This document shows positions 4,016 through 64,000 of a DNA stretch of 64,000 nt, in pieces. The notes under the pieces were generated by a model. It searched no databases and had not been told where the DNA came from. It saw only the letters and a list, made by a program, of their open reading frames with translations. The first letter of the stretch is position 1. The number at the start of each line of letters is the position of its first letter. The stretch covers positions 99,052-163,051 of the forward strand of contig NW_021833274.1 of NCBI RefSeq assembly GCF_006345805.1. The letters are read 5' to 3'. The DNA is from Octopus sinensis (lineage: Eukaryota). A program made the position numbers and the translations under genes.

Positions 4016-7000
4016 TTAAACCCACGCAGCCCAACCCTCAAACATCAAGGAAAGATTGTTAATGTCCTGTGATTTGGCCATCTCCATGTCAATCTAATCA
4101 TAAATTCAGACAAAAACCAGTTCTTCTACAGTCCTTTCATACCCATCATCACTCAGTCCTCTCAATCTCTTCTCAACAAAACCAAATTCACCCCCAAACG
4201 AATTACTTGATGCCTCCTTTCCACATCCATTATCCAGTAGCCCATTTTTAAACATTTCCAAGACATTTTGCACACCATTAATAACCCTAAACTCAACATG
4301 TGGACATTACTCATTAAATACTCGTTGCATTTCATTTATTGTATCACATGTGGGTTTTCTTTCAGTCAATAAGCCCTCAAGATATTTCAATCCTGATTTG
4401 AGTTGGCTGCTAATACGACATGGTCTCTATAATTGCCATTAATGGGGACTTACGTTATGTAAAGGACACTCATCCATGACTAGAACTATGACCTCAACTG
4501 CTTTCGTCACTTTAATGACTAATCCCTTAAGTATAGACAGTTCAGAAGTCTTATATAACATGTTATCATATATATAACCAAATACAAATCCTTTCTTTCA
4601 AAAGTCACTTTTTTCTTAGATATTTCTTGCATTTCGGCACTCAGGTGAGTTGATAAAAAAGAAAGCCATTTTGGAACTTTTGAATGAAGTGGCTGATATA
4701 TTGAAAATAAAACAAAATACTTTTATTCGCAAAAGAGAATGCTCTACTGGTAATATTTTAGACTGAATATCTTTATATCTTTTAAGCAGAGCAGTATGAC
4801 TAGAATGGTATATAATACTTAACCTGTGTATATATTTGGTCAGTCGGTAAAAATCAACACGCTCCAATGAAAATCTACTCTCTTCAATCACCAGTATTGC
4901 TGTCAGGTGTTTCTTAAGTGCAGGGTCGATGGTTATTTCCTTTACTAATACCAAAAAAATCTACCTCCTTTACTCTTTTTAGAAACTCAAATCTAATCGA
5001 CATTGCTTCTTCTGACAAGTTAAACAACCACATATATGTTCTATGTGTAGTATCAACAAACCCAGAATATATATTTATTATATCTTGACTGATATACAGC
5101 TGATTATGACCGAGTTTGGGCACATATAGATCAGCGAGTGTGTTTATTATAGAATCTAAAGGCTGAGAGATTACATCCAAAGAAGGAAATGAAAACTCCT
5201 TGCAAGATGAATGAACATAAATCAATATATCAACGATACTGAGTCCAATCCGAATAAGACATGTGATTATGTAATATCGAAATATTTTAAATGTGGCACG
5301 ACTTGCCCCCATTTGAACGTACAAATATTCAAACTCACTCCAAGGCACTTGCAACTCTTCAAACACAGAATATGCTTTTATTACGTCATCAAAAGCTTCA
5401 ATTTCTCGGGTTTCAACCTTACTACCATCCATATACTCTGACAGACTATTGGGACTACTGCCTTCCACTAATTCTCTCAATTTGAGTATTTCAGGGTCGT
5501 TTCTGAGAAATGCAGCAAGTACAGGTATCACAACCTTCGTGATATAAGCAGCATACAAGTTCTGAAATATAACAACGTGATGGAACCTTATGTACTACTA
5601 CAATTTGTCTAAATGTCCCCACATCAGATATATCCACACATTCCGAACTACTGTCAGTCCTTGAAAAATTTTCAATTACATTCTTGGGTCTGTACTGGCC
5701 CATTTCAGTTATGTCATTCGCAACCGACCTAATCATATACACTAATCATTACTCCGAATAATTGTCAATATATTCAGTCAAAAGACTAGTCAGTCTAAAA
5801 ACTACGTGATAAGTCCTTCCAATAGGTGGAGCCTACATTTAAGATGTATTTCATACTAGTTTTATCATATCAACATATTCCTGTATGATAGAACTTGTAG
5901 TACTCACAGATCGTAACAAGTCTACCGCCTCCTCTACTCTGCTCTTCAATTCAATAATTATCCCAAGCATATTCCTCAATGAAGATGTACATTGTTCCAA
6001 CTCTTGTTCTGCATGTCTTTGTTGTTTAACTCTATTATAATTTAAAAGTTGTCTTCACCTTTTCTCGAAAGAAGAATGCCAACTTTTACCTGAGGACACA
6101 TATTCCAATTGGTCTCTTATTTTATCATTTTGATTTTTTAAAACAATATTACGCTGATTGAGCTCTTCAGATGCACTCAATTCCATAATGGCGTTGTGGA
6201 AATAATCATCAATTCTATGTGTCAAAAAATTCTAAAACTAACGAGGGGGGCAAAGAGTTGACAATATAAGAAATTAGACACGACTCACAGTAATTTGGAC
6301 ATGTTGGTTTATCTGTCTGAATTGACTCATTGGGTGGACTGTATAAAAATACTTTGAGAATAGACATGAGAGTCATTCTATCCGATCGCAACATTTGCAT
6401 AATATTAATCAAAGTAGAACGAAATAAGCCCTAATCTGTCAGTCCGACAACCACCTTCATTCCAAATGGTCCAAGAGCTCTCTCAATGTTACGTGTAAGA
6501 CGGAAAGGCACTTTCTCGGGTGTCTGGAGAGTCTTTCCCTTATCAAAACAAATTTTGAAATCTACGTGGATTATCTGCAATAAATCGTCTTTCCAACCTT
6601 TCCAGTCGACAAATCAAGAAGAATGTTATCCAAATGTCTGTCACCTAATCCAATGATGTAACCCAGCCCTGACATGACAGCACATGTCCGACAAAACATG
6701 TTTGTTGCTCTCAACCAAGTTATTTTTGAATCACAACAAAGCCACAATTTCCTATATTTAATTAAAAAATCAGCATACCGCGATATTAGCGAATTAGGTG
6801 TTTCAGAACATAGTTTCTGGAATATTTCTCTCTGAAGATCATGAGGCCACAGTCTCCGAGGCTTTCCAACATACTTTGAGTCATTCTAAGAACTGCATAC
6901 ATTTCCAATTGATTTGGCTGCGGAGTAGTAAATATCTCTAATAGACAATTGGCCATTTCCAGACTCTCCAAGGAACTGTGAGTAGATCTGTTGAAGGGGT

Positions 7001-10000
7001 GTGGAATCATCAACCCACTCTATCAGTCCACAGGCATTCCCGAGAGGAATGACTGAATAACACCCAATACTAGTAAAACTTAGTTTCCACAGACACCAAC
7101 CAGACATCACTGATAAGAGTGTTCACATAACTGAATAATTGCATCATCAACTCATCCATCCTCAAATCCTCGACTCCTTTGAGTAAAAAATGATGTCTTG
7201 AAATGAGAATTAAGTCAAAACTTATTTCCACTTTTATCAATGAGGCAAAGCTTCTTTGGTTTTGATTTTGAAGGGAATATTTTAATTTTGGATTCAATGT
7301 GATCAAGTTTCAGTACCCCGCCGTTCTCAGAATTGAATTTACAAGGCAGTTGGATATGATTGAACACTTTCTGACAAACTTGGTCGCACAACACAATCCC
7401 ATTCCTCATCACATGTTTCATCTCATTATCCACTACATAACACATCTGTATGATTATTAGACTGGCATACATCCTGGTAATTCTCGTAAAGAACATTGAC
7501 TGATTTGACTGTTAGTTTAGACATGTTCTCAATCAGTTTATGAATTTGTGGTCTAATTCTGGCAATATAATAATTGTTAAAGGCAGAATGTCCATATTTC
7601 TCGATTGAATTGTCAATTGATGTACTCAATGAGGACAACCAGTCGACAGTCTGGTCAATGACTAGAACAAAACTCACCCAGTCGACGACTCCCCTGTATA
7701 AATTCTCAAAAAGGTTCATTCGGTCAGCCCCATCTCCACAAATATTATCCTTTAGAAACCTCAGGACTTGCCCCGTGGTGTTATTTCGGTGGTTAAGTGC
7801 AGAATGAACCCTCTCGAGTGGGAGAACACTCACAAATTTCAATTTTTCCAATAAAAAGTGCGTCTCATAAACCAATCTATAACTTTTACAGAAAATATAC
7901 AACTCTTTATTAATTTTACTAATAGCAGCATGCAAATATGATTTGTATGGTCCATCATTCATAGCTATAACAGGTATAACAAGAGAATGTGGATAAGCAA
8001 CAGACAACTCATAAAGAATTTTGACAACACATGCTCGGACTATCGAAGATGGATGAGACAGTCTGGATATTAGCTGTTGTCTTACACCTAAATATGAATA
8101 AAAAAGCAAGTCTACTCAGCCAGGGAAATAGCACTTCAGTATTAATTATATCACACACCAGAAAAGGATAATCGTCCAACAAGTCAAGCAAAGCAAGCAT
8201 TATTTGAATACTCTCCCCCTATCTATCAGTAGTAGAACAAATACAGTATGGGAAAGACACTTCAAAAGTCCTTTGACTGTACAAGATAACAATTTTGGAC
8301 ATGCACTAATCACATCGTACAGCAAATTGGTTTCCTCATGTTTCAAATATTCCCGGGAAGACATGTAATTTTTGAATGCCGTCATCTTATTTTGTTCCAA
8401 AGAAGAACAGTCAATATCAAGCTATCAATGTGGGATAGTCACAACTTGGATGTTTTGGGAAGAGGCAATGCACATTTCAACATCTTGTGGTCTAACTATC
8501 CGCTTTATTTCAGACATCTGTTCATTTGATAAAGAAGGAATGCCACTTTACATTATAATCATGACTAATACATGTTTTGTAACTGTGACAGGCAAGCAGA
8601 AGAATATGCTCTCCACAAATAACCACAGTCTGGAAACCGTGTAAAAACAATGCTTGCTGTACTCTCAAATAACTCTTGAAATGCATTTCCCTCTGCTCCA
8701 ATAACATCCAAAAGTCCTTTCGAACAATCTCCCCCAAACATAGCCATACAGGCAATCTTAAATGCACTAAGTTAAACATTAATCAAAATCTGACACCTAA
8801 TGCTTATATCACTGTAACCACAATCCGCCAGTAATAACAATTTGGAGTAATCTTCGGCTTGCAATGAAGGTAACAGGCCAAAGGTATGAATTCGTTCAAA
8901 GTACTCAAACCAGTCATTTCCTCTCACTTCAAACAGCATTCTCTTATATTTAAGTCTCTCAGGCATATAGAGATTCTTCAGTGTCTCAAAAGTTGAGTAA
9001 CACTCAGTATCCAACAGTCTGTCAAACAAATTCTCAGTTAGATTAGTCGAATAACCTCCAATGGTTAATAATCTAATATCATTATGCATTTTTTGTCCAT
9101 AATTGAGATCAAACAGCTGAGCTGCCCTTTCTATTTTATCAGTAAGGTCAGTTCCCATCTCCATTCCAGTAAATGTGCGAATATCCAAGCATAAAGTCAG
9201 AGTATCCACACAAGCCATAAACGAATCTTGACATTTATCAACTGGTTTGCACATTGTATGCCCGAAATCAGTCAATTGTGCTATCAAATCAGTAGAAGGG
9301 AGAGGAATATGGTCAATCACATCAGCCACAACAGAAGGTGGAGTGTCAGTTCCAATACACTCCAACGCTTCCACCCACTGACATAAACTAATATGACATT
9401 GAACCAACTGAAATGGTAAATTTAATATAAAACTTCATATCTGAGATATTCTTTAATTTGGGGAGAATAGTCACTATTGAGGGAATCCCTTAATTGTTTA
9501 ATGGCTGTTTCAAATCTGTGATGTAAGCTGTATGACTGTACTTGTAGGCACTTTTGCTTATAATTCCATCAATCCAACAATTTCCATCAAACTGGTCGCG
9601 AATTCCTCTCAAATGATAAACCGAGTCAGGACACTGAGACATCACACGGACACAATGTAACACAGAAATGTCCTCCTTTTCACTAATAGAATAAAATACC
9701 TGGTTGTCTTGATATGCTTGATACATGTGAAAAGCAGAAATTTCATACTGACCACAGACTAATGACAATCGAGACATGATAAAACTGGTTTGGGATGGCC
9801 AAAGTCCAGCCTTAGTAATTAGAGTATTATATTCATACATATAATTGTCCAATATGTTCAAAAAGGAGTACAAATATGTTTATTCTGCAAATATCTTCAA
9901 CCCCACATATTCTAAAAGAGTCTATCATGGCAGAAGGCATATCTTATATTTGTTAGGTAATAAAAAACCATTAAAACACGTCAATAAACGTGAATCACTA

Positions 10001-12050
10001 CATATTTGATGTGCTGCCTGACGTATAACAAACTTCATTGCACTCTTATAGTGACTCATATCATAAACATTCGGCGGAAAAACCATATTATCAACATCAA
10101 AGTGATCTATGATGTAATTTCCATGACTTTCCATCACGTTTCTCACAATGGTATTAAACCTACCAATATATGTTTAAGTAACCTCTCAAAACTACTACTG
10201 GTAAATAAATCTAATATTATTGGCAGGACATTGCTGGTGAAATGTTTCAAATCTCCAATCCTATATACATCAGACATAATTAGACTACCGAATTGATTCT
10301 GGATTCTCAATACCAACTCTTCGTTGTGTCATTTCCCCTTGTTTTAAAGCCCAATCAACCACAACTGCCCGTTCTAGTTTGGTTTTGTCCATAATGTAAA
10401 GACATAGCTCGATATATTGCCCACATCCATACAAATGAGTCATCGACAGTAACAAAACACAACATGTATATAAAGTATCAGAACAAGTAACAAATCGACA
10501 CAACAATTCCACCAAACACATTAGTTTACTACAAATACAACAATCATACTAACCCTGAGACTTTGGAATTAAAGAATAAATCAGATTTGACAACCGATGG
10601 CAACAATAAATGAGCAACTTGACTATCAACTGTCTCAATATTAGGGAGAATAACATCAATCAGAGTACAAGACAATAAAGTATAACTCAACACCTTGTCC
10701 AAAACATTTAATAAATGTTGACATGTGATCTAGAGCTCTACTAATACACAACACCTTATCCAAACGTGGACACATCAACAGCAAATCACATTTTATCAAA
10801 GCTTCCTCAGGATTGTCTGCATTTATGGAAAGAGCAAGAGAACTAAACTAACACAAAATAGTAACACCGAGTATGCCTGGATATGTAATCGGAGGGGATT
10901 CTACTAAACACATCAAGCAACAGTGATCTGCCGGAAATATTAACAATATCAATGTGCTCAATCAAATTCTCAGTGACTTTATTCGACATTACTTTACACA
11001 AAATCTTCCAAAATGAACATCCGAGAGGATAGTTGTGAGTCAATTGTGACACCACAAAACTCGTTGTTTTTACATAACATAGAGTTCCATCCTCCGTGAA
11101 ATGATCAATTAATTTATTGACACTTCTAATAAGTGCTCGTGACTTTAACTGTGTGATCACTGCTGTGTCAATTACCATGTCAATAGTCTGTCATTTGGTA
11201 ATTACATTATAACCTGCTCTTTGTGGTACGAGGACAATTCTTGTGGGTTAGAAAAGGCGGTTAGAATATCGATGAGGACTGTAATTTCATCTACTGACCG
11301 AGTGGAATCTTGTTTTATTAAAGACTATATATTATATGTATATATACATATTGAAATATCAAATCTTCCAATAAACAAGTAAATATTGAATGAGCAGTGT
11401 CCTTTTTAGTCCAAATGGGGACACTCACTTTCCTTATTACTGAGAGAAGTGTAACCTTGTGGTCCCATTTGTTCCCCAAAGTGATATATAGGCCAATATA
11501 ACAATCAAGTAATTTCTATTATGTAACTATCAAGGAATATTACTTCAAAATATTCACTGCCAATTACGTAATACTCATGAGACAAATATGTAGTGATAAT
11601 ATCAGTCTGTAGATCAAGTAATGGAGTATATTCAGTTATATTGTCCATTGCCAATTTTACGTTTCCGATTAATTCCTGAAATAAAAGTAAATTGAAGACT
11701 TTTTTGAATGAGAGATTCTTGTCTGTGAGAATGTGACTGATTATTCTAAGCACACATGATTTCTCACATATTCCTAAAGAGGATTTAAAGCCCAATTTTA
11801 TGATCCATTTGGTGATTTGCTGAGGATCCATTAGACGTCGACATAGTGTGGTAATACAACTGAAAATTAGAGAGATCATCTCATTGCTTGCACAAATAGA
11901 GAGAGCATTGATAAAACTGGATAGTATGAGTTCGGCCTTGACAGAGGGCTGTCTATTATAACAAGTAGAGAACCAATGGGCTTGTTTCTTGGAGGTAGGA
12001 ATAAATTAGGCGAATATGACCTGTATTCTGTCCTCTTTCACATTCAACTA
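4016..12050 (-). CDS. SMG1: Serine/threonine kinase SMG1 (PIKK family, nonsense-mediated decay), multi-exon with micro-introns; 5' end approximate
   Basis: Kinase motifs [19 protein letters not shown] and [17 protein letters not shown]. After removing introns 6752-6778, 6575-6597 and 6431-6454 it reads [64 protein letters not shown] end [14 protein letters not shown]-stop (TAA 4016-4018). The ~2.3 kb between kinase and FATC is the SMG1-type insertion. Start codon not resolved. Confidence 0.9.
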
Positions 12051-15830: not shown

Positions 15831-16035
15831 GCAAAATCTCACGTATTAAGAATATCCTTGATGAAAACGACAGCGAGAATATTAACAATGATGAACTCCC
15901 AATTATTCGCGATAAAGAAATTCAATTCATCCTATGTTTTTCTCTTTAAAATTAAATGCATATATCATTATCGACCATGAATCAAAATTAAAGCTATATC
16001 ATATTTGACTTTGACAGAATGTGCAATCACAGATT

Positions 16036-28771: not shown

Positions 28772-30205
28772 CAGAGGTTTCCAAGCTTTTTTTTACGCGC
28801 CTCCCTTAGAGAAAAAGTACAATCTTGCGCCTCCCTTTATATTCCATAATATAATACAATTATTATTTTATCAAAAACAATTTTTTAAAACAAAAAGTTA
28901 ATGAGATAATTTTTTTTCCATCTTGGCGCAAAGTTTTTCAAATCTTGGTGTCATCGCAGAGAGTGCTACTCTTAGCTCATTAGTCACTACTAAACGAGTT
29001 CGATATTTAGATTTAATTGCAGCTAGTGCAGAAAATCCAGTTTCGCATAAATATGAAGTAGCAAATGGCAACAAAACTTTCATTGCTTTATTCGACAAAA
29101 TTTCATATTCCGTTCTTACATTCAACCAAAAAGAAATTAGCGGTTCTCTCTCAAATTTTTGTTTCAATAATGTATCGCATGACAATTCTATCAATTTTTC
29201 TTTTTCAAAAGTTGTCAATGCAAATTGATTATCTTCTTCATCAATAAATGGATTCTGTATCCATTCGAACATTTTACAGTCGAGATCTTTAAAATAGTGA
29301 GCAAAATGCTTCAACAAACAATCCAAATGTTCAGCAAATATGTCTTTGTTTGCTTCAATGTTCACTATGGCGCAAAAGGTGTTTAAAAGTGGAAACATGT
29401 CATAGATATTTTTTTGTATATTTGATTTCCATAATACCAATTTTTTCATCAGATATGTCATCAATTCTTCTAGCGACTGTGTTATCAGCAAGCGGTATTT
29501 GCTGTAATTGTTTTGCATAGGATTCGCCAAACATTGCTTCAACCATATCGATAGCTGCTGGCAAAACTAGAGTTTCTCCGATATTGTGCGGTTTCTTGCA
29601 TTTTGCAATCCTGTAAGAAACTTTGTACGATGCTAGTAAAGCATTTGAAGAGACAGAAACAAGTTTTTTTAACGATTTCGTTTGGTTATCAAACTCTTCT
29701 AATTTTCTTTTAAAAAATTCTTCAGACTTATGGACATGTTCAGAATGCATCGTTTCAAAATGTCTTCTTAATTTGCATGGCCTCATACTATCTGCTGCAA
29801 GTGTTTTGAGGCAAAGCAAACAGAGGGGTTTTTCATAGAATCAACAAAGATACGTGTGAATCCTAACAAAGTAAGATGGAAAGTTTTTCTTGTCTTTGGA
29901 GTGGTATTGATTATATTCCAATCATTTTGATTTTTTGAACCATCGTCAAAATCTTTATTATTCGTGAATTTTCTTTTGCAACCACTCAAGAATTTATTCA
30001 TGTGTTAAAATTATTTAATTGTCTAAAAATTAAATAAATTTTTGAAAAATATAATTTTTAAATTATAACTCTTATTATCGGAATATAGTCACGTTTTTTA
30101 CATAGATATAATTTTCTAAAAAATGTTTCTGATACTTCTTTCGCGCCTCCCTTGACACGAGTCAACGCCTCCAGGGAGGCGCGCCTCCCCATTTGGAAAC
30201 CTCTG
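28772..30205 (-). mobile_element. hAT (Buster/Charlie, ZBED5-like) internal-deletion derivative
   Basis: TIR cagaggtttccaa; 8-bp TSD acttagag (28764-28771 / 30206-30213). BED finger CLLCLKTLAADSMRPCKLRRHFETMH and dimerisation motif LLPFATSYLCETGFSAL; the catalytic middle is deleted near 29445. Confidence 0.92.
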
Positions 30206-36468: not shown

Positions 36469-38532
36469 CAGGGTTGTTAGATTTAAATCATTTGATTTTA
36501 ATCAACAATAAAAATCAATGATTTAATCATTTAAAAAAATCAAAAAAATCAAAAAAATCATTTAAATTTTTTTAAATGTCTGGAAGAAAGCGTGATTCTT
36601 TGTGGGCTTATTTTGATAAACGTATTATTCCTGGAAAGACCGGAAGCCGTGCCAGATGTCGTAATTGTGGGAAGGACATACAAGGTCTTGTATCTCGGAT
36701 GAGGCAGCATCATTTATTATGTCGAAGTAATATTGATATCCCTGAAAATATGCCGAGACCTGAAAGCGAATTTCCTCCAAGGATGAAGGACCATTCATTA
36801 ATCAATTTCGTAACTACGACGACTTCATCTAAGAAAGATTTGATGGATCTGCAACTCGCTAGATACATATTTTCTACAAACACTCCGTTTGCTGCTGTAG
36901 AACATCCCGAATTTGTCAAATTCGTCCAAATGCTTCTTCCTGGGTATCGTTTACCCTCTCGTCATCAAATTGGTGGTACATTACTTGATCATGTGTACGA
37001 CCAAATACATGAAGACTGTCGACAAAGACTCCAGGACAAAACAGTGTCTATGATGTTGGACGGGTGGAGCAACATTCATAATGAACCCGTTATTTGTGTC
37101 TCGGTTGTGACATCAGATGGGGAAAATTATCTCATTGACACTGTGGACACTTCTGGATATAGCCACACTGCGGAATATCTTCAATCTGTTGCTTTAGCCT
37201 CCGCACAATTGGCTGAACAACGGTTTGGATGTAAAATCGGCAGTCTTGTAACGGATAATGCTGCCAACATGACTAAAATGAGACGGATAATGATGGAAGA
37301 TGGCAATGAAATAATTACTTATGGTTGCTCGGCACATTATCTCAACCTTCTTGTGAAGGATGTCGAGGTAGCGGACGTTAAAGGAACTATTGTAACAATC
37401 AATAAATATTTCCGAAACGTCCATCTTCCAGCTGCATGGTACAAATCTAATGGAGGAAAAAAACTCGTTCTTCCGATTGATGTACGGTGGAACACTTTAT
37501 CAGACTGTTTTCAATCTTATCTGGATAATTGGTCTATTATTTTGAGAACTTGTGAGGAACACAGAACGGATATTGATACAGAGATTTTTCCAAGGTCCAA
37601 AATATTTCCCAAACGACGCGTTGAAGAATATCTGATGCTTATTAAACCAATTGCTGTCGCTTTAGATAAAATTCAGAATGATTCTACCACGATTAGTCAT
37701 GCTGTAGAAATTTGGAAAGAACTTGAACAGACATATATTGACAATGGATGTACGAATATTTTAGGAAAAGTGAGAATTCGAGCAAAACAAGCATTAACAC
37801 CTTTCCACTTACTTGCGAATTTGATCGACCCGACATGTAGTGGGAAATCTATTTCAAATGTTGAGATTGACATTGCATTGAGTTATTGTGCTCAAAATTA
37901 TGAATATGCACTTCCGACTCTGATTAATTTCAGAGCAAAAGCTGATCCATTTAAACAATACATGTTTGCTCCGAATTTATTGAGTAAAGTATCACCTATA
38001 GCTTGGTGGGAGTCGAATTCATACCGTTACCTTCACAAGTAATTCACTATGCAAAAAAATTCTTGGAGCAGTTGCTTCGACAGGTGGAATAGAAAGAATC
38101 TTTTCAACATTCGGATTTCTACATTCAAATGTACGCAATAGGCTGGGGATCGAAAAAGCAGCCAAACTTGTTTCCATTTACAAGCTTTTAAATAAATAAA
38201 AACGATTTCCATTGTTTTTGTTTTTATTTAGTTCGCTTTGAAATATTTTTTATTTATTAACCCGAAGACCACAAAGAAAGAAAGCGTAATGCAAACTAGT
38301 TAAGTGATCCCGGTGGACATAAGGAACTACGATAGATCGTTCTGCGTGGCCGTTTTTCAGTGTTTATGTACAAAGAGAGAGGTTCTCTGATAAGCCAGGT
38401 GGAAAGGGTCGTTTTGAAATAAAGATCATTTAATTCAAAAAAATCGATTTAAATCAAAAAAATCGTGATTAAATCAAAAAAATCAGATTTTTTTGATTTT
38501 TTTGAAAAAAATCATGATTTTTAACAACCCTG
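36469..38532 (+). mobile_element. hAT transposon (Ac/ZBED-type), nearly full-length transposase, frameshifted near the C-terminus
   Basis: TIR cagggttgtta/taacaaccctg; TSD gtttttga (36461-36468 / 38533-38540); AAAATC subterminal arrays. ORF 36576-38042 has a BED finger, LDGWSN, VTDNAANM, CSAHYLNLL and VRWNT. The dimerisation motif ASTGGIERIFSTFG continues out of frame to ~38200. Confidence 0.93.
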
Positions 38533-41375: not shown

Positions 41376-42628
41376 TCAATTTAAAGGTATATCATCTTCA
41401 AAAGGAACCTCATCAGGAACCTCATCAGGAACCTGTTCAGGACCAACCCTGCGAATCTTATAGTTCTTGTAAAGACCACTGACTAAGTCAGTCACACATA
41501 GATCCGTGGAATTATTAGAAATCATTTTCAAAGCAAAAACCCCATCTTTCATTAAAACATTTTCCACAAATTCTCTGAGAATAGAATATAAATCTCCTCA
41601 TCAAAAAGATCATCTCGAATGTGTTTTCTTATGTATTGAACACTGCTATTTGTAGACACCAAGTACCAACACCACTTGACAAGACTGTAAGCGTTGAAGC
41701 AGACTATCATGACCAGCCAGAACCAGTAGAAGCAAAAAATAGCCTCAGAGAATAAATTTATAGGAAGCACACATTGCACTGTGTAACGATGTCCTTTGAT
41801 TTCATATCCAATTTCCCGTACACGCATATCACAATAAGTGACCCTTGGAAAATAGTAAGAATCAGCATTTGGTTTCCCAGAATTAAATTTGTGGAGTAAT
41901 TGAATTCCATAGAAACCAATTTCCCCACTCGATAGCAGCATGTCTGTAAGAACGCACTGGGCAACTGTGTTGACAAAGTACATAATTTTTGTAAAAATAT
42001 ACAACCGACAGAGGTAACGGTCATATTTTTTACCGCCACAAAATAATTGCCATAATTTCTTTTATAATATCTAGCTTGTTTGATTTATCCCACCGCCTTC
42101 TCATGTCAAAATATCGGTTAAAATACTCCGTCATTAATTTAATGATCTCCTCTTTGTCCTCAGTGTTACCTGCGTCGATATACTTGTTTGCCGCTCTGAT
42201 CATGCTGTTAAGGTTAAGTCCGCTTTTCTCATTATTTGCTCTCCAAAATAGGCATGGGATTTGATAGAAAAGAGCCAATCCAAGCAGAATGAAAGGCATC
42301 CATTGATAATAGCGAAGTTGAGGTTTAAAATTTAAATTGTCGGTTTCAGGAATTTTTTGGTCCATGGGAATATGATATGTGTTTTTTACCCAGCAAAACT
42401 TTTCAGTATAAGTAACATAATCATCTTAATTAAAGAAATTATTTGGTACTAACATATAAATTGTGCTGGACACCAGCATTTGATTGGAGTTCTGACATAT
42501 TCATAAGACGTAACTACGACTGCAAATACAATCAGAAGCCAGGATGAATAAGTATGATTAAAACGATCAGTTCTGTCGTCGTCTGTTCGAGCATTTGCAA
42601 TGTTTCTGACTATGCCATACAACTCCAT
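41376..42628 (-). pseudogene. Innexin paralogue with two frameshifts (probable pseudogene)
   Basis: ATG 42628 MELYGIVRNIANARTDDDRTDRFNHTYS; intron 42425-42453; YYQWMPFIL and CVLPINLFSE. Short deletion at ~42040-42046 gives an immediate TAA, and there is an 11-nt insertion at 41583-41593 relative to the intact paralogue. Confidence 0.8.
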
Positions 42629-43657: not shown

Positions 43658-44568
43658 CGGGGGTGTCAAAGATACGGCCCGCGGACGATCTCAAATGGCC
43701 CGCGGTAAAAGTTTAAAAGTGTATTTAAAATCTAAAATTATTATTTAACTCCAAATAAAAATACAAGAATTTAGATTCTAGAATATAAATAAAAATACAA
43801 AAATTATTACTTAAAAAATAATTAATTGTTTTTTGGATTTATATTATTCTAATTGTTTCTCTTGTCTTGTACTGATGCCTTTTTCAACAAAGCGCAAAGT
43901 TGATACAGAATGCAGATCTTTTCAAAAAAAGTGGAACCTGGAATATTTCTTTGCCGATTTAAATCGTAAACCTACTTGTTTGGTCTGTAGACAAGAAATT
44001 TCAGTTGTCAATGAATATAACATTCGACGACATTACCAAACCTACCATGCTCATGAATACAATAATTTGATGGGAAAAATTAGAAAAGAGAAGAAATTGA
44101 TTTGAAATGTGACTCAGATCTGAAGAATAAATTTACCATGGTGGGCTTAGACACCTTTTATAAATATCTCCTGCCGAAGTATCCCAACTTAACAGCCTTA
44201 GCTGAGAAAATCTTGTCAATGTTTGGAAGTACATATCTATGTGAACAACTTTTTTTTTAATGAACATAAACAAAACAAAATTTCGATCAAGGCTCACCCA
44301 CACTCATCTGAGTGAGATTCTAAGATTGACGGTAACTCAGGATTTCACTCCAGATATTGACGCTATTATGAAGAAAAAAAGATGTCAAGTTTCTGGAACA
44401 TATTTTAATTATAAAAATTAATAAATTTGTTGTTAAATGATTTTAAATTAAAATTATAAATTATAAATCGTAGTACGAATTTTGTTAAATCAAAAATAAA
44501 TAGTCTGGCCCGCGGAGCCTAAAATTTTTTTAATCCGGCCCGCGGAAGAAATGAGTTTGACACCCCTG
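43658..44568 (+). mobile_element. hAT SPIN/GTF2IRD2-like deletion derivative
   Basis: TIR c(g/a)ggggtgtcaaa; TSD gtatacag (43650-43657 / 44569-44576). N-terminal KRKVDTECRSFQKKW...CLVC fused at ~44095 to C-terminal IDLKCDSDLKNKF...MFGSTYLCEQ. Confidence 0.92.
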
Positions 44569-46621: not shown

Positions 46622-47810
46622 TTATTCAGAGGGAAGCCTGCGAATCTTATAGTTCTCGAAGATAGAACTGACTAGGTCAGTCACCAAAGGATCCGTGGAG
46701 TTATTAGAAATTATTCTAATGGCAAAAACCCCATCTTGCATTAAAAAATCCTTCACAAAGTCCCTCAAATTTCCTTGATCAACAAGATCATCTCGAATGT
46801 GTTTTCTTATGTATTGAACACTGCTATTCGTAGACACAAAGTACCAACACCACTTGACTAGACTGTACACGTTGGAACAGACCATTATGACTAGCCAGAA
46901 CCAGTAGAAGCCAAAAATGGCCTCAGAGAACAAATTTATAGGAAGCACACACTGCACTGTGTAACGATGTCCTTTGATTTGGTATCCCAGTTCCCGTATA
47001 TGAACGTCACAATAAGTGCTTTTGGGAAAATAGTTAGAAACTTCATAAGATTTCCCGTATTTAAAGTTGTGGAGTAAACGAATTCCGTAAAAACTAATTG
47101 CCCCATTCGATAGCAAAATGTCTGTGAGTATGCACTGAGCGACCGTGTTGACAAAGTACATACATTTTGTTAAGATGTACAACCAACTGAGGTAGCGGCC
47201 ATATTTTTTACCTCCACAACAAAATGTAATGGCCATAAGTTCTTTTATAATATCTACTGTTTTTTCTTCATTCCTCCGCTTTCTCATTTCAAAATATTGT
47301 TGAAAATGCATCGTAGATAATTTAACAAACCTATCTCTGTCCCCAGTGTTACCTGCTTCAATATACTTGTTTGCCACTCTGATCATGCTGTCAAGGCTCA
47401 TTCCACTTTTCTCATTATTAGCCCTCCAAAATAGGCATGGAATTTGATAGAGAAAGGCCAATCCAAGCAGGATAAAAGGCATCCATTGATAGTAGTTAAG
47501 TTGAGGCTTGGAATCAAGGTCTTCGGTTTCAGGAATATATTGGTCCATAGGGATATAATATGTGTTTTTCACCCAGCATATATCATTAGTATATGCAACA
47601 TAATTAACTTAATTAAAGAATTAATTGGTACAAACATGTAAATTGTGCTGGACACCAACACTTGATTGGGGTTCCGATATATTGATAAGTCGATACTACG
47701 ACTGTGAATAAAATCAGAAGCATTGACGAATAAGTATGATTGAGACGATCAGTCCTGTCGTCGTCTGCTCGAACATTTACACTGTAGTAGACTATGTCAT
47801 ACAAATCCAT
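46622..47810 (-). CDS. Innexin (gap-junction / hemichannel protein), intact, 2 exons
   Basis: MDLYDIVYYSVNVRADDDRTDRLNHTYSS...PIKCWCPAQFT; 28-nt intron 47608-47635; then NYVAYTNDICWVKNTYY, YYQWMPFILL, FPKSTYCD, CVLPINLFSEAIFGFYWFW and QDGVFAIRII. Four hydrophobic segments and conserved extracellular cysteines. Confidence 0.93.
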
Positions 47811-54642: not shown

Positions 54643-56016
54643 CAGGGGTCACCAAACTTTTTGCACTCGCGGGCCGGATTGACCCCAACACAATGAACGC
54701 GGGCCGGAGCACGTGCATAGGATTATAATTTTACTAGAAATTCATAAGTGTGTTTTTTACAATAAAAACTAATTTAAACAAAAATAAAGTAAACAAAAAT
54801 TTTAATGAGAGCTATGGAACTGTGATCTTTTTTTGATAAGTTCATCAATATTTGGTTTTAAATTGCTGCATCCTATCATGAGAATTGATTTTAAGTGTCC
54901 GTCAGTCAATCTTGCACGATGGGCAGACTTAACATATTTCATCCTCGAAAACGTTTGCTCACATTGGTAAGTTGTGCCAAATATAGAAATCATCTTTATC
55001 GCAAAATTCTTTAGTCTCGGAAACTCATCATCCTTGAGATATTCGTAGAACTCAGCGAGTTTGGTCCGTCTGTGACAATCTTTGAGCTGTTCATTTGATT
55101 GTAAGTCAATCACTTCTAATTGTAATTCATGTTGAACATTTTCAACATTACAAGAAAATGGATTTTCGAACAAAATTATATCGCTTTCAATTTTGTCAAG
55201 TTCAGAAAACTTATGTAAAAAATGATGTTTTAATTCTTTGATAATTCCAAAAAAGAAGTTGCGATGTTCCCGAAATGTCAACTGACTCATCCAATGCAAG
55301 AGAATACCACAACATATTACTTGTCTTTTCACAAATTTGTAAATATATATTTTTTCCAAGCTCTTCAGTTCTCCGTGATACAGAACTCGCCGACAAACTT
55401 ATTCCATCAAATAAGGAAGAATTTAGTGGGCACAAACAATTAACTGCTTCAATAATGCAATTTTTGATATACATCCCATCACTAAAGGGTTTCCCGTGTT
55501 GTGAAATAATTTTCGTTATCTCGTATCCAGCTCTTGTTACATTTTCATTATTTTCAAAATTTTTTTTTATAAGGCCTTGTTGAATTTGTAAAGTGCGTTT
55601 CAGTGATTCAACTTTATCCTCACGTAGCTTTCCAGTGTACTTGGAATATATCGGAGCATGATTCGTTTCATAATGACGTCGAATGTTATACTCCTTCATA
55701 ACAGAGAGATGTTCGTGGCATATTAAACAATAAGCTTTCTGCTTTAATTCATCTTTCGCAAAAAAATACTTCAATTCCCATAATTTATTGAATACACGGC
55801 ATTCGCGGTCAACCTTTCTTTTCATATTAGACATAGCAACAAAGAAAAATTTAACGTTAATGCTGATAAGTTTTTTTTCGAATTAAATCTTGCAAAATAG
55901 TTTTATTTAAGTTAATTATTAAGGTATTAATTGAATATCTCGAAATAGTGCGCGGGCCGGATAAAATGTTGTCGCGGGCCGGATCCGGCCCGCGGGCCGT
56001 AGTTTGGTGACGTCTG
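54643..56016 (-). mobile_element. hAT SPIN-like deletion derivative
   Basis: TIR caggggtcaccaaact / agtttggtgacgtctg; TSD atttagac (54635-54642 / 56017-56024). KRKVDRECRVF...CLIC...ALDESVD joined at ~55250 to FGTTYQCEQTFSRMK. Confidence 0.92.
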
Positions 56017-57274
56017 ATTTAGACGATAAACAATCGGTTATTCATATTAATCATTACTAATAACTTAACATTTAATCTAACACAATGAAAATCATTTTTA
56101 AAATTGATACTGATGGCTTTGTTTTAAGAATTACGTTTTAGAAATAAGCTAGATATTTTTTGTATAAATTGTGGCTAGAGCTTTTTATAAATTGTGGTTT
56201 TTTATAAATTGTGGCTAGACTAGATTCGAACTGGACTAAATTAAAAATAGAATATGACTAAATTCGGTCCATTCTCTCTATTTTGAATTTAAAAATTTTT
56301 AATTTATTTATGGTGTCAATAAATTTTTTCAAAATGAATTTAATTTTGTGTCGTTACTCTAAAAAATTAAGAGCCAATTAACTTCCCAATTAGGTAAGCA
56401 TTCAAAAAGATTTTATAAAACATTTCCTATCAGTCAATCTTTAAAAATATAGAAATTCAAAATCATAAAAATTCATGAAATACTAAAATTTATCTTACAG
56501 GCCTCGCCTCTATACCGGACAATTCTGTGGATCAACATTAATTTTGACATAAAAATTAGACATTTAAAAAAAGAAAGAAAATTCAAAAGTGTGTCGCATT
56601 AGTTTCTGTGTCAATTTTGTAAAGAACGATGATAATTTGTCGATGATAATTTGTCCAGACAAACAAAAGTTGTTAGAATGTGCTATCTAGAACAGTGGTT
56701 CTCAACGGTGGGCGATTCGCCCCCTAGGGGCGATTTTTTCTGCCAGGGGGGCGATGGCTGATTGCTAATATTTGAAAAATTAAAATCTTATGTTAGAAGT
56801 CGATAATCTTTGAAAAAATAAAGATATATAATCCAGTCTAATAATATTTATTAATAATATGATATTTTTATTATATTTTATTAAAATTTCTAAGCGTGAT
56901 TTCTAGTTATCTTTATGGGTCGTGTTCAAAAAAAAGTCAGAATGTATAAAGATGAATATATTTCTCTTGGATTTATTAAAGATCCTCAAGATCCTAATAA
57001 ACCACTTTGTCTTCAATGTGGTACAATTTTTTCGAATGAGGCAATGAAACCGTCTCGTTTGATTGAACATTTAAAGCGAAAACATCATAATTCAATTGGA
57101 AAAAAGCCAGACTTTTTTCTAGAATTAAAAAAGAATTTTGAAAATAAAAACACCTTACCGTCAATCTTTAATAAAAATATATCTCAAAATGTCTCTGGAT
57201 TATCTTATTATTCATATAAAGTTGCAGAGATAATCGCAAAAACTGGTTGCATTATTATTTTAATTTATAGGTAA

Positions 57275-57701
57275 GAAAAAAGTAAGCAATTGGGTGGCTA
57301 AGGGAATTGTCGAGGGCCTGAGGGTCAGCTCAGCGATGCCGCGCTGCGTATTGAGTGGCAGTTTCCGCGGAGCACAGCAACCGAGATTCGCTGGAACAGC
57401 CAGCTCGTCTCCCTTCGGTCGTTTGTTTTTGTGGAGATTTTTCTACCAATGGCGGTGAGGAGTTGAGTCGCAGCCTTTCCGACGATTCCAGAGGTTTCGA
57501 AGGCGAGGGGGGCAAACTCAAAAGCGTCCGAAATACACCGGTATTTCGTCATCTTTGTCTCTTCAACCAGCGCACTGGCGGAACCCGGGTTTGCGACAGT
57601 CCTGGGAAGCATTGTCGCCGAAAAAGAGTCGACACACGTGGCATCCCAAACCAGGGACTTGCCTTCCCTAAAAGGAAAGGTCGTCATCCCGTCGGGACGC
57701 A
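57275..57701 (-). mobile_element. CRE-like 3' fragment with a 13-bp TSD
   Basis: RPDGMTTFPF...WDATC...FAPLAFETSG...FQRISVAVLRGN; direct repeat aatttataggtaa at 57262-57274 and 57702-57714. Confidence 0.9.
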
Positions 57702-57756
57702 AATTTATAGGTAATGCCCATTCGATTGCAGAAAATGTCATCCGTCCTTGTTTAAA

Positions 57757-60005
57757 TCTTAATAATAAAATGGTATGGTGTGTGTCTGTCTGTCTGTGTG
57801 TCTGTCTGTGTGTCTGTCTGTCTGTCTGTGTGTGCACACCAACTTCAAATTGGCAATACGATGTCCTCGACTTACATGATGAGGTCCTTAAAACCTTCCC
57901 CCCAAAAAAATAAAAAAAAAATTTTCTGCATTTTGGTTAAAATGAACAACTACAATGTCCTCGACTTACATGATGAAGTCCTTAAAACCTTCCCCCCCAA
58001 AAAAATTAAAAAAAATTTTCTGCATTTTGGTTAAAATGAACAACTACAATGTCCTCGACTTACATGATGAAGTCCTTAAAACCTTCCCCCCCAAAAAAAT
58101 AAAAAAAAATTTTCTGCATTTTGGTTAAAATGAACAACTACAATGTCCTCGACTTACATGATGAAGTCCTTAAAACCTTCCCCCCAAAAAAAATTAAAAA
58201 AAATTTTCTGCATTTTGGTTAAAATGAACAACTACAATGTCCTCGACTTACATGATGAAGTCCTTAAAACCTTCCCCCCCAAAAAAAATTAAAAAAAAAT
58301 TTTCTGCATTTTGGTTAAAATGAACAACTACAATGTCCTCGACTTACATGATGAAGTCCTTAAAACTTCCCCCCCAAAAAAATTAAAAAAAATTTTCTGC
58401 ATTTTGGTTAAAATGAACAACTACAATGTCCTCGACTTACATGATGAAGTCCTTAAAACCTTCCCCCCCAAAAAAAATTAAAAAAAAATTTTCTGCATTT
58501 TGGTTAAAATGAACAACTACAATGTCCTCGACTTACATGATGAAGTCCTTAAAACCTTCCCCCCAAAAAAAATTAAAAAAAAATTTTCTGCATTTTGGTT
58601 AAAATGAACAACTACAATGTCCTCGACTTACATGATGAAGTCCTTAAAACCTTCCCCCCAAAAAAATTAAAAAAAAATTTTCTGCATTTTGGTTAAAATG
58701 AACAACTACAATGTCCTCGACTTACATGATGAAGTCCTTAAAACCTTCCCTCCCAAAAAAAATTAAAAAAAAATTTTCTGCATTTTGGTTAAAATGAACA
58801 ACTACAATGTCCTCGACTTACATGATGAAGTCCTTAAAACCTTCCCCCCAAAAAATCAAAAAATTATTTTCTGCATTTTGATTAAAATGAACAACGCGAA
58901 TGTCCTCGACATTCATGATGAGGTCCATTAAAACCTTCAAGGCAAAAATCTCACGTATTAAGAATATCCTTGATGAAAACGACAGCGAGAATATTAACAA
59001 TGATGAACTCCCAATTATTCGCGATAAAGAAATTCAATTCATCCTATGTTTTTCTCTTTAAAATTAAATGCATATATCATTATCGACCATGAATCAAAAT
59101 TAAAGCTATTATCATATTTGACTTTGACAGAATGTGCAATCACAGATTGCACGACTTTGAATAGAGTGTGCAATTAACAGATTTTGAAAAACACTTTGAT
59201 AGTTGAAACCACATTAGCACAATCATTAACACAATTTACCACCAATTGACGCACGACCTTGAATAGAGTGTGCAATTAACAGATTTTGAAAAACACTTTG
59301 ATAGTTGAAACCACATTAGCACAACCATTAACACAATTTACCACCAATTGACAGCGCAATCAGAAGAATTTGCGTAAAAATATTAACTATTTACTTGAGT
59401 TTTTCGTAAAGATAGAATTTATTTTCGGTATGCCTCTTTTCCTAAACTTTTTTATTATTCAAAAATAATTTTTTAAATAGATAACCGAAGGAGGAAAAAC
59501 GAAGCTGAAGAAAAAACGGTCAGCTTAATAAGGTAATTAATTAAATCTTTTTTGTGTGTCGCTTTCTTGCCTGCCGCATCTCCCCCTGCCCCATTTCCGC
59601 CAGTAAAAAACAAAAAAATAAAAAAAGAAAAAAAAGGAAATTACAAAGGAAAAATGAAAAAATTAAATATAAAAAAAATAGACCACAAAAAATGAAAAAA
59701 AAAGTTTGCAATGACAATAAACAAGGCCCAGGGACAGTCATTAAAGGTAGTTGGGTTATTTTTAGAGAGTGAGTGCTTTTCACATGGACAGCTGTATGTG
59801 GGATGCTCGAGGGTAGGCAGAAGAGAAAATTTATTCATATATGCCAAGGAAGGACGGACGACAAACATCGTTTATCAACAGGCGATAGAATAGGGTTACA
59901 TTAAACCAGGTAGTTTTATACATCTACATAAACTTATAGTTGTTTGATGAAACAGGCCCTCCGCAGGAGCTAGGTCGCGGTGAGCGAAGCGAGCTGCCGA
60001 GCTAG
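57757..60005 (+). mobile_element. Non-autonomous Helitron (copy 2)
   Basis: A|TC...CTAG|T termini, with the same internal organisation and helicase remnant as 14868-16890. Confidence 0.9.
57857..58940 (+). repeat. ~94-bp minisatellite: 11 full units + 1 degenerate unit
   Basis: Unit starts at 57857, 57951, 58045, 58139, 58233, 58329, 58422, 58518, 58613, 58707, 58803 and ~58896. Confidence 0.95.
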
Positions 60006-60664
60006 TAAAATTTAAAAATGAAAACCTGACACAATTCAGGGGAGAAAAATCTATAAAAATGAAATTCCCGAAATTATGTGAAAAAATGATGCCAATAATA
60101 TTATGTTTTCCTACGTCATACTGCGTAGAGAGAGGATTCAGCACTCTGAATAGTATGATCGGAAAAAAAAGAAACAAACTAAATATAGAAGAAAGAGGCG
60201 ACATTAGAATTACACTTACGAAAAGAAGTACAAATTTTGAAAAACTTGTCAATCTTCATCAACCACAAGGATCTCATTAAAACTCTTATTTTTTAAATAA
60301 AAATTTTTACTACTGAAATAAGGGGGCGATATAAAAATTGGAGGGGCGAAAAAAATTCCAAGGGGGCGATACAAAAATAAAGGTTGAGAACCACTTATCT
60401 AGAACCACTCCAAAGTGATTTTTAGCAGAATTTGCGTAGTTATTGAATAGTCCTTAATAAATATCTACTTTTTAAATATGTCTGATACAATGCTGCATCC
60501 AACTCAATACTTAATGAAAAATTTTTGTGTAAGCTTAAATGTTTGGTTCAATTCATTCATTTATTCGCAGCGTAATCGTTTCCTTCTGTAGTTTTTGTTT
60601 TTCAGTCTAGTTGTTCGCAATATATATTCTTTCGTTGTTTGCAAAAAACAATCAATATGATTAG

Positions 60665-61499: not shown

Positions 61500-64000
61500 A
61501 AATATCCATTTAAAATTCCGATGTACCGAAAATGCAGCTGCTTTCAAGGCAGAGTTCTCGAAAGCCAAAATGTTTTTCGAAGGCCGCCATAAATTTGCCT
61601 CAGTAACTATGAAAGCCTCTGTCTTGATCCTAAAGAAAATCTTTCACTGGATCTCGAACAACGACCTCAACCTTAAATTCTCGAATCAGATATCAAGTTC
61701 GAAAGGTACTCTCGTAATCGAGCCGACATTCCGTTCGGAAAATTTTCGCTGGACTCCAGAACCGAGGCCAATATTCTCATCCGCTTTGGAATCACTGCGG
61801 GTTTAAGCCATATCCGTTGTGAATGGCACAACACTGCCCAAAATCGAAGCCAACCCCCAACGTCGCAGCTGCAAAAACATTAATTGCAACAACATTGGGC
61901 ACCTGGCGTGCTACGGTTGATGCCCATCTGCCAAAGCAGCAACAGCAGCCTAATTTAGGTATAGAAACGGAAACCCCCGGGATGCCGGTCACTGGACATA
62001 AAATGGGGCAGTTCCTTCACACCAGGAACCGGTTCATGCATGTTCTATCTTGAAAAACTCAAGTCCGCAACCTTACTATCATCGAGGACAAGTTATGTTA
62101 ATTCCATTCCCTCGGAGTGAAAACCGATTCCTTTTGGCTAAAAGTCGAATGCTTATATTCCAAAAACTCCTCCTCCTGCACCAGTTTGATCAATCACTTC
62201 TTCTTAAGTACAGCTCACTGTCTTCTCGTTGGAGACCTAAACTCGAAGCACAGGGCATTTGACTGTCGGACGACCAACCAGGATGGTCGTACACTGAATA
62301 AAGTCACTGACAAGCTCAGTGTATTTGTCAGGACCTCAGAAGTCCCGAACCACCACTTGCCCAACGGCTCAGACAACTTTTGCTTAAGTATCTGCACGTA
62401 CACTGTCGCCAACCTTATGAAAGAGCTCACAGTCCCTGATGATATTGGGACCCACCACCTACCAATGGAGGTAAAATTCACGCCTGAATTGAAAGGCAAG
62501 AACGCGAATTTACTTGGTTCTCTCTTTTGAAGATCAGCTGGCCGCAGAAGCTTCTTTCTACGCGACAACAGTATCAGGGTCCGCTACAACTCAGCCCTCG
62601 ATATTGACTCTGCGAGTAATGCAATAATCAAATTTATTCACCACTATCACACCAACTACGCAACCAAACTACGTGCTGGGCAGGCGGTGAAAACCAATCT
62701 GTGCGCGAAAGTGACTTGGAGAGAAAGCGCCTGAGAAACAAACTTAGACGCTGTGTGGACCCCTTTGATCGGACCACGCTCAAGGACATGGTCTCTAAAA
62801 TCAGTGGAAAAATAAATTTCAGGACAAAGGTGGACGCCGCCAGGAAATGGCAGAAGGCTTGTAAAAATTTTAACCACAAAAACCCAAACTTCTGGGACTG
62901 TTTTCACAAAGTGTCAAACCTCGCAGGAAAGTCCTCCCCGCCGAGGCTGCACAACCAATCCGGAATGCCTACCTCGCTGGAGGAGATTCCGAACATTTTC
63001 GCAGAATATTTGGCTGTAACCCAAAAGGCTTCTTAAGGGACGATGCAATTCTCAATGTCGAAGCCACTGTCGTGCCCATTGCCATCGGAACACTACCCAA
63101 TCACCACAAGAGAGGTGACCTGGGATATCCGTTCGTCTAAAGACAACGCACCGGGCCACGACAAGCTCCCTATGCCAGGAGTGTCAAACTCATTTCTTCC
63201 GCGGGCCGGATTAAAAAAATTTTAGGCTCCGCGGGCCAGACTATTTATTTTTGATTTAACAAAATTCATACTATGATTTTTAATTTATAATTTAAAATCA
63301 TTTAACAACACATTTATTAATTTTTATAATTAAAATATGTTCCAAAAACTTGACATCTTTTTTTCTTCATAATAGCGTCAATATCTGGAGTGAAATCCTG
63401 AGTTACCGTCAATCTTGGAATCTCACTTAGATGAGTGTGGGTGAGTCTTGATCGAAATTTTGTTTTGTTTATGTTCATTAAAGAGAAAAGTTGTTCACAT
63501 AGATATGTACTTCCAAACATTGACAAAATTTTTGCAGCTAAGGCTGTTAAGTTGGGATACTTCGGCAAGAGATATTTATAAAAGGTGTCTAAGCCCACCA
63601 TAGTAAATTTATTCTTCAGATCTGAGTCACATTTCAAATCAATAATTTCCAATTGTAAGTTAGCTGCAAGATGTGTAATATTTGCTGTGAATGGTGATCG
63701 AAAAACAGTAAATTCTTTTTCAAGTTCACGAAAAATTTCAAAACGTGTCTCAAACTGTTGAAGTAATCCTGTTATTTTCACTTTTTCACTTTCTTGTATT
63801 TTTATTTGGTGTTAAATAATAATTTTAGATTTTAAATACACTTTTAAACTTTTACCGCGGGCCATTTGAGATCGTCCGCGGGCCAGCTCTGGCCCGGGGG
63901 CCGTATCTTTGACACCCCCGCCCTATGCGCTTGTTTAATGAGGGATCCGAGGAATTACACAAGTTCCTGGCGCGACTGTTGTCGGCGAGTTTGAAATGGG
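61500..64000 (+). mobile_element. Jockey-like LINE relic (ORF1 end, APE, start of RT), interrupted by a hAT and running off the window
   Basis: APE motifs LLVGDLNSKH and DIGTHHLP. Removing the hAT and one TSD restores APGHDKLPMRLFNEGSEELHKFLARLL, the start of the RT region. Confidence 0.8.
63176..63920 (-). mobile_element. hAT SPIN/GTF2IRD2-like deletion derivative (same family as 43658-44568)
   Basis: TSD ccctatgc (63168-63175 / 63921-63928); TIRs as in the 43.7-kb copy; retains the C-terminal 154 aa (63317-63781). Confidence 0.92.

Follow-up and report, generated by a model that had tools for sequence, protein, structure and literature searches.

In a 64,000-nucleotide stretch of the Octopus sinensis reference assembly (RefSeq GCF_006345805.1, contig NW_021833274.1, forward-strand positions 99,052 to 163,051; hereafter the window), a copy of a hAT transposon of the Buster clade carries at positions 57246-57270 a 25-nucleotide (nt) segment with GT..AG ends. 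Comparative analysis suggests that this segment is very probably a true micro-intron of the U2 type with GT-AG ends and forms the first intron (intron 1) of the transposase gene in a likely dicyemid host, and that both it and a second micro-intron of the same gene, intron 2, are gains. The original prediction, made from the letters of the window, had proposed a host-sized spliceosomal intron in a Buster gene, and this proposal is supported comparatively: the segment is present family-wide, its removal restores a conserved motif, and host genes of the contig have GT..AG introns of 23-28 nt (modelled median 25). In the following, Cxxxx denotes contigs of the assembly (2.72 Gb in 13,516 contigs) and L0xx the copies of the family, or of related families, that were read; the window is C9745:99052-163051.

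Read through from the ATG at 56915, the open reading frame (ORF) of the window copy ends in ...AEIIAKTGCIIILIYR followed by a stop (...VAEIIAKTGCIIILIYR), as had been described, and the 25-nt segment (GTTGCATTATTATTTTAATTTATAG) was found at the same coordinates and with the same ends as first reported. Removal of the 25 nt together with the adjacent insertion gives ...IAKTG-NAHSIAENVIRPCLN..., which reproduces exactly the product originally derived; the spliced junction is ...AAAACTG followed by GTAATGCC.... When both introns are removed, a protein of 591 amino acids (aa) is obtained, a conceptual sequence assembled from real copies of the family. This product matched 432 database proteins at E<=1e-10, the best at 6e-190, with 99-100% coverage and targets of 588-596 aa. 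The named matches include SCAN domain-containing protein 3-like (SCAND3-like), ZBED5-like, ZBED8 and ZMYM6-like proteins, which carry PF14291, PF27073 and PF27046; identity to the SCAND3-like and ZBED5-like proteins is 40-52%.

The gap-free fit to a Buster consensus that had been claimed for the spliced product was confirmed by an alignment with 12 Busters from databases, ten of them uninterrupted ORFs and two of them NCBI gene models, with no gap at either junction: KTG-NAH corresponds to K(S/T)G(K/S/N)(P/A)H, and YVR-YFDD to YVR(F/Y)(I/F)xD. In Oratosquilla P0112 (mantis shrimp), AKTGNAHTVAENVI is contiguous, the motif at KTG-NAH being uninterrupted. Residues D246 and G247 (in ATDGA), C274 and H277 are invariant in the query and the 12 Busters, D179 and E180 (in LDES) are conserved in at least 90%, and a C-terminal SYCVERGFS motif is found in copies of the family. 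Because the Pfam matches of this AT-rich, divergent protein stay just below threshold (PF05699, hAT dimerisation, 16.5 bits against a cut-off of 21.4; zf-BED, 19.1 against 20.6, E 0.0014), family membership rests on full-length homology, terminal repeats and target-site duplications.

At full length the element measures 2,147 bp, as in copy L051, and the assembly contains at least 35 copies of it. A search with exon 1 returned dozens of copies of 89-100% amino-acid identity, all on small contigs, with the best match on the chromosome-scale contigs C1-C29 at 49%. Among the copies read, DNA identity to the reference copy ranges from 91.5% to 99.3%, and internal-deletion derivatives are frequent. 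Of the 25 copies matched at the intron 1 site, 20 have the identical 25-mer; across the whole assembly, 25 exact occurrences and 39 at <=2 mismatches were counted, on small contigs only and mostly directly after exon 1 of the family, and the 25-mer is also found in old, heavily decayed copies. An insertion specific to one copy is ruled out by these counts. Copies lacking the 25 nt, which had been named as the finding that would speak against an intron, were sought, as were processed copies, in the form of intron-less junctions; with up to 3 mismatches allowed, the 2.72 Gb contained no such form of either junction.

The copies end in terminal inverted repeats, CAGTGGTTCTCAAC at one end and GTTGAGAACCACTG at the other, and the 5' terminus of the window copy recurs at 22 further loci that were read, corresponding to 20 independent copies. 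Matching 8-mers flank the window copy (ATCTAGAA) on both sides, and the same is true of most of the others that were read. Buster-type elements reportedly prefer nnnTAnnn targets, as Arensburger and colleagues are said to have described in 2011; TA stands at positions 4-5 of ATATAGGC, CCGTACAT, GCTTATAG, CTCTAGAG, GTTTAGAA and ATCTAGAA, but not in GTCTTGAG and ACATGGGG. The gene consists of exon 1 (331 nt), intron 1 (25 nt, phase 1), exon 2 (about 255 nt), intron 2 (usually 31 nt, phase 2) and exon 3 (about 1.19 kb).

Intron 2 (GTATTACTTTTTATAAATACTTTTTATAAAG) lies between ...SILMAYV-R and YFDDDSILQEELLF..., has GT..AG ends, interrupts an Arg codon in phase 2 and contains in-frame TAA stops. 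Its removal gives ...MAYV-R-YFDDD, the spliced junction being TATGTAAG joined to ATATTTCG. Of 22 copies, 17 have a version of 31 nt, four (L045, L049, L052 and the diverged L055) one of 30 nt, and a single copy one of 18 nt. Intron 2, for which L051 and also L036 serve as examples, holds a 13-nt tandem duplication (TACTTTTTATAAA twice), and the 18-nt version corresponds to a single unit; the copies constitute a natural length series of a micro-intron. Natural splice-site and length variants of 18, 24, 30 and 31 nt are available among the copies of the family as a whole. The original prediction had noticed neither this second, 31-nt intron, nor that the window copy is a dead, internally deleted one with two insertions, nor that the host is probably a dicyemid rather than an octopus.

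A sister family, whose gene structure is known from one copy read (L056 on C9073) and from the exon-boundary pattern of matches, has a similar terminal repeat (CAGGTGTTCTCAACC) and a protein 48% identical to that of the window family. L056 carries a 29-nt GT..AG segment (GTTATTTTCGAAGTTTTAATAAAATTTAG) of different sequence at the same Arg codon and in the same phase as intron 2. Its intron 1 site is uninterrupted (IAKTSSSHTIAENV is contiguous), and it has a 26-nt GT..AG segment of its own (GTTATTTAACATTTATTTATATGTAG) about 17 codons upstream of that site. In many sister copies, the match pattern places exon edges at residues 92/93 and 198/199. In one further sister copy (C9587:83595-84209, minus strand), residues 1-199 seem to be encoded without interruption, the frame staying open where its relatives have the 26-nt intron, with ~18 extra bases. 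Between the two families, the proportion of nonsynonymous differences (pN) is 0.32 (corrected rate, dN, 0.42) and that of synonymous differences (pS) 0.71 (dS >2), alike in exon 2 and exon 3. The gene thus remained under purifying selection while interrupted, which is the strongest indirect evidence for splicing: selection preserved the codons flanking a 29-31-nt segment that carries stops or shifts the frame, throughout the divergence to 48% identity, and this can be understood only if the mRNA loses the segment.

It could be argued that the 25 nt represent a frame-breaking insertion, left by an indel or by repair, which became fixed when a dead non-autonomous lineage was founded, with GT..AG ends arising by chance and the copies being spread in trans by another Buster. 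Such an origin would fit with the finding that no intact full-length copy was detected and that the collections searched gave no RNA evidence of splicing, and intact intronless Busters with ORFs of 607-608 aa, located on the same kind of contigs, could provide the transposase. However, only about 0.25-0.27% of random 25-31-mers of the window start with GT and end with AG, so that chance would supply these ends in ~0.25% of events, and the four frame-restoring GT..AG segments of the two families, which represent three independent events (intron 1, the sister 26-nt segment and the shared intron 2), all show them. Moreover, the removal is base-exact and restores a motif conserved in other animals, and the lengths match the modal intron length of the host. 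A second interruption at the same codon and phase in a 48%-identical family, with dN/dS ~0.2 or less, is incompatible with a gene dead since its interruption, and we consider a scar improbable.

Several observations nevertheless weigh against a functional, spliced gene. No intact full-length copy was present among the three read or among the copies scored; the best exon 3 scored is open over 370 of 396 aa, exon 3 being open for 370 codons after intron 2 in L049, and some apparent frameshifts may be homopolymer errors of the long-read assembly. The family could have been mobilised in trans, and current activity is not implied. When the spliced product was sought with 591-aa and 266-aa queries in 5.8 billion proteins, including assemblies of public runs, the best identity was 50-52%; an exact look-up of the read-through ORFs returned no match, and no transcript, cDNA or spliced protein of the family was found in the searchable collections. 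The 5' splice site, GTTGCA, departs from the animal consensus; this counts only weakly against splicing, because the host sites found here are equally degenerate and reduced splice-site motifs are reported for dicyemids (PMC13644364). The AT content of the transposon introns (83-87%) exceeds that of the introns modelled in a host gene of the window, SMG1 (68%). The old copy L039 has a 24-nt version of intron 1 that is in-frame and stop-free and has lost the AG; this version is a product of decay, and the segment can be read through once mutated. As an indicator of selection after the gain of intron 1, L039 (91% identical) is uninformative, being an old decayed copy with many indels. Finally, intron 1 has no conservation across families, and its support, consisting of its ends, the host modal length, base-exact frame restoration and presence before the amplification of the family, is weaker than that for intron 2.

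Two further explanations for the 25 nt were weighed. An introner-type mobile micro-element, which would bring or create its own splice sites, is suggested by the 3-nt repeat GGT that flanks intron 1 (ACTGGT...ATAGGT) and could be read as a tiny target duplication. It is also suggested by five identical copies of a 2-mismatch variant (GTTGGATTATTATTTTATTTTATAG) located away from the listed family matches, at C2502:518077, C7755:110420, C8703:423588, C9587:109825 and C11751:16950. The 39 matches at <=2 mismatches in 2.72 Gb, however, mostly follow exon 1 of the family directly, and none of the 36 host introns modelled in the window resembles the 25-mer, which makes an introner very improbable. 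Alternatively, the interruption might be bypassed or removed without the spliceosome, for example by developmental DNA elimination or translational bypass. Dicyemids form extrachromosomal circular DNA during development, and nothing found here points to an elimination route. The segment ends in GT..AG and not in the TA ends typical of eliminated sequences, its size and composition match the introns of neighbouring genes, and all four segments of the two families interrupt coding sequence in such phases that taking them out recovers the reading frame precisely; of all the explanations considered, this is the one to which we assign the least weight.

A micro-intron spliced by the host is consistent with the host genes of the same contig. 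One gene of the window encodes a phosphatidylinositol 3-kinase-related kinase (PIKK) resembling SMG1 and another encodes an innexin (Table 1). Exons of the SMG1 model were chained heuristically with an intron limit of 15-60 nt, and an individual junction could be misplaced by a few bases; since the exons almost abut, however, their introns are necessarily tiny. The resulting coding sequence is 7,269 nt long with an intron mode of 25-26, the third intron base being T, A, G or C, and conserved kinase motifs pin three of the introns to lengths of 23, 24 and 25 nt. In the transposon introns, A residues are present a few bases upstream of the AG; the branch-point and polypyrimidine signals of the host are too weak to score. 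The model matches the PI3_PI4_kinase profile continuously (E 1.4e-48), and among solved structures it matches human SMG1 best (E 1e-55), in one stretch across five modelled introns, with mTOR and ATR ranking lower. The last residues of the model form the FATC motif ...EGWAAWV. The term host-sized in the original prediction is therefore correct, because the SMG1 and innexin introns of the contig match the transposon introns in size; the host also has SMG1, the kinase of nonsense-mediated decay (NMD). A second innexin paralogue lies ~5 kb away at 41552-42425 (minus strand); the upstream paralogue is frameshifted beside an A-run and could be a pseudogene or reflect a homopolymer error.

Judging from ~25-nt introns, 38-42% identity to octopus homologues, and GC and LINE (long interspersed nuclear element) content, the window is most likely DNA of a dicyemid parasite co-assembled with its host Octopus sinensis. 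For a long time animals were believed to lack introns shorter than 30 nt; these have lately been documented in dicyemids and myxobolid myxozoans, the only animals in which they are known according to PMC13644364, which also reports reduced splice-site motifs for dicyemids. Dicyema japonicum lives in O. sinensis and has a genome of 67.5 Mb with 36.7% GC, 49% repeats and many LINEs, as given in PMC6736024. The GC content of the window is 26-43%, and LINEs and hATs are abundant in it. The window innexin has near relatives only among '[Octopus sinensis]' models on small contigs, and it is 38% identical to the octopus innexins, whose genes are found on a 208-Mb chromosome and which O. vulgaris and O. 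bimaculoides also possess; named dicyemid sequences were sought among the innexin matches and none was present. The SMG1 homologue on chromosome C28 (10257378-10258073, minus strand) is 42% identical and lies in a 2,676-codon open frame, that is, in a very long single exon. Small contigs likely of the same origin as the window include C9745, C9073, C9497, C12603 and C9082, and RefSeq proteins located there bear octopus names, such as XP_029655957.1 and 'innexin unc-9-like'.

The original prediction had left open whether the intron shrank together with those of the host or was gained within the element. A gain is favoured over shrinkage, because the sister family lacks intron 1 and because the aligned Busters and the other Busters of the assembly run gap-free across the site. 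The assembly has at least three such intronless Buster families, represented by L057 and L059 on small contigs and by L058 on chromosome C3. L059 (C9497:543500-547500), with identical copies on C12461 and C2025, has intact ORFs of 607-608 aa, and proteins at least 90% identical occur in ENA, Logan and JGI data sets. The intact, intronless 607-aa Buster ORF on C9497 is letter-identical to XP_029655957.1, annotated as 'SCAN domain-containing protein 3-like [Octopus sinensis]'.

We propose that the transposase gene would be spliced by the host spliceosome, whose own introns cluster at ~25 nt, and that both introns were gained within the transposon lineage. Intron 2 would be the older, being common to the sister family, and intron 1 would have been gained after the two families split, with the 26-nt intron of the sister family likewise acquired later and independently. 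More broadly, and with slightly less than even confidence, we suggest that Busters in a dicyemid genome gained ultra-short introns at a minimum of three sites that can be ordered on the family tree (intron 2 before the split, intron 1 and the 26-nt intron after it), thereby providing a datable, multi-copy record of how introns shorter than 30 nt originate.

The introns may also bear on the control of transposase output. Retention of intron 1 would bring translation to a TAA straight after the intron and leave a BED-finger stub of 118 aa (119 aa in the window copy), and retention of intron 2 would lead into an in-frame TAA. From unspliced RNA, at most a stub limited to the BED finger could therefore be made, and such RNA might either undergo NMD or give rise to a product that only binds DNA. 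These predicted stops, and the presence of an SMG1 gene in the window, are compatible with the splicing/NMD switch that the original prediction had proposed. By analogy with the P element repressor, a protein consisting of the BED finger only, made upon retention of intron 1, may damp transposition; the truncated BED-finger stub recalls the switch from transposase to repressor through retention of IVS3 in the P element, a likeness that is one of resemblance only.

In Tc1 and Tc3 of C. elegans (introns ~40-50 nt), Ac of maize and the P element, the transposase mRNA needs host splicing and the introns are of host-like length. CACTA elements (PMC4158355) also have host-like introns. The introns of the window family, at 25 and 31 nt, are around or below the ~30-nt floor traditionally assumed for animals and are seemingly recent gains. 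With the Buster clade (AeBuster1 and the domesticated ZBED5, SCAND3/ZBED9, ZBED8, FAM200 and ZMYM6), the family shares 8-bp nnnTAnnn duplications, a short terminal inverted repeat starting with CAG and a colinear 591-aa protein, and it keeps the BED-like finger, ...CATDGA..., CxxH and the C-terminal ...SYxVExGFS...; however, the aligned ORFs and gene models and the other Busters of the assembly are gap-free at both sites, whereas the window family has two introns shorter than 32 nt. The introns resemble the ultra-short introns of dicyemids and myxobolids (median 22-27 nt, GT..AG, reduced signals, AT-rich), and the sections available of the papers on these (PMC13644364; PMC6736024) describe host genes and do not mention micro-introns belonging to transposons. 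Introner elements (PMC9860276) create introns by insertion, but the 25-mer is not dispersed among other genes.

The window copy itself (Table 1) is a dead derivative, internally deleted and bearing two nested insertions, so that the interest lies in the family and not in this copy. Its exon 1 is 100% identical to the best family matches, and of the full-length reference L051 it retains only positions 1-610 and 1758-2146. The retro-insertion beside intron 1 had been recognised from the start and proved to be a LINE truncated at its 5' end with a 13-bp duplication (AATTTATAGGTAA); this assignment follows from its minus strand, which encodes the C-terminal end of a LINE ORF and resembles the ORF at window positions 14507-14854. 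Counting one copy of its target-site duplication, the insertion measures 440 bp (57275-57714). It is located immediately downstream of intron 1 and is missing from other copies, in which intron 1 runs directly into exon 2. It is present in L001 (C9073:276719-280051), which is 100% identical to window positions 55415-58747 over 3,333 bases and is a redundant haplotig or overlapping contig. In L006 (C8703, about 362216-362470), a further copy of the family, an independent poly-A-tailed insertion of ~225 bp is found at this very edge of intron 1; retroelements seem to favour the AT-rich end of the intron as a target. In the window copy, the LINE inserted at this edge and a composite repeat replaced the middle of the gene. 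This composite repeat (~2.2 kb) is 98% identical to window positions 14868-16868 and contains (TGTC)n, eleven units of a 94-bp satellite, two of a 102-bp repeat and the end of a helicase-like ORF, which (..AMTINKAQGQSL..) by eye resembles the C-terminus of a PIF1/Helitron-type helicase.

Table 1 Coordinates of the window copy of the Buster element and of the host genes used for comparison
Feature	Position	Strand	Evidence
Left 8-bp target-site duplication ATCTAGAA	56685..56692	.	Identical 8-mer at 60397-60404; fits nnnTAnnn
5' terminal inverted repeat CAGTGGTTCTCAAC, then subterminal GGGGCGA repeats	56693..56706	+	Inverted-repeat pair 90% complementary
Transposase exon 1, 110 codons + 1 nt, BED-like zinc finger, end ...IAKT-G	56915..57245	+	Translation from ATG 56915
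Probable intron 1, GTTGCATTATTATTTTAATTTATAG, 25 nt, phase 1	57246..57270	+	GT..AG ends, family-wide, removal restores KTG-NAH
First 4 nt of exon 2 (GTAA), within left copy of LINE target-site duplication	57271..57274	+	
Nested 5'-truncated LINE fragment, 427 bp, C-terminal end of ORF2-like protein	57275..57701	-	13-bp duplication flanks
Right 13-bp LINE target-site duplication AATTTATAGGTAA	57702..57714	.	Left copy at 57262-57274
Exon 2 remnant ..NAHSIAENVIRPCLN.., element broken afterwards	57715..57769	+	blastn: L051 544-610 = window 57702-57769
Second nested composite repeat, in place of 1.15 kb of transposase gene	57770..60005	.	L051 611-1757 missing
Exon 3 C-terminal remnant ...FPTSYCVERGFSTLNSMIGKKRNKLNIEERGDIRITL...QPQGSH, then stop	60006..60280	+	ORF 59984-60280; blastn: L051 1758-2146 = window 60006-60395
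3' terminal inverted repeat GTTGAGAACCACTT, last base mutated from G	60383..60396	+	
Right 8-bp target-site duplication ATCTAGAA	60397..60404	.	
SMG1-like PIKK gene, 36 exons, 35 GT..AG introns of 15-28 nt, median 25	4094..11973	-	Gene model and profile/structure matches
Innexin, N-terminal exon joined to main exon by 28-nt GT..AG intron	46622..47800	-	Joined protein is an innexin

Transposons account for most of the window. Further hAT-like ORFs or pieces of transposase genes lie at 36576-38042 on the plus strand (a 488-aa open frame), 43815-44105 (plus), 28898-29840, 54802-55882 and 63317-63811 (all minus), and LINE reverse-transcriptase ORFs are located at 13-15 kb, 18.5-21.9 kb, 33-35 kb, 39-40 kb and 50-51 kb. 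Like many of the small contigs, the window appears to be parasite-derived, which affects users of the assembly and matters for claims of horizontal transfer between octopus and parasite.

In summary, the element is of a known kind, a DNA transposon with host-type introns in its transposase gene, and stands out for its record-short intron size in an animal, the apparently recent gains and its location on what are likely parasite contigs within an octopus reference. That a transposon gene needs host splicing is already well known, and the conceptual weight of the finding is modest in this respect. Intron gain in animals is rare, however, and these cases are clear candidates for it, with splice-site mutants supplied by the many copies. 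A multi-copy transposon with two such introns, whose intronless state is known from its relatives, would constitute a built-in reporter of intron biology in its likely dicyemid host.

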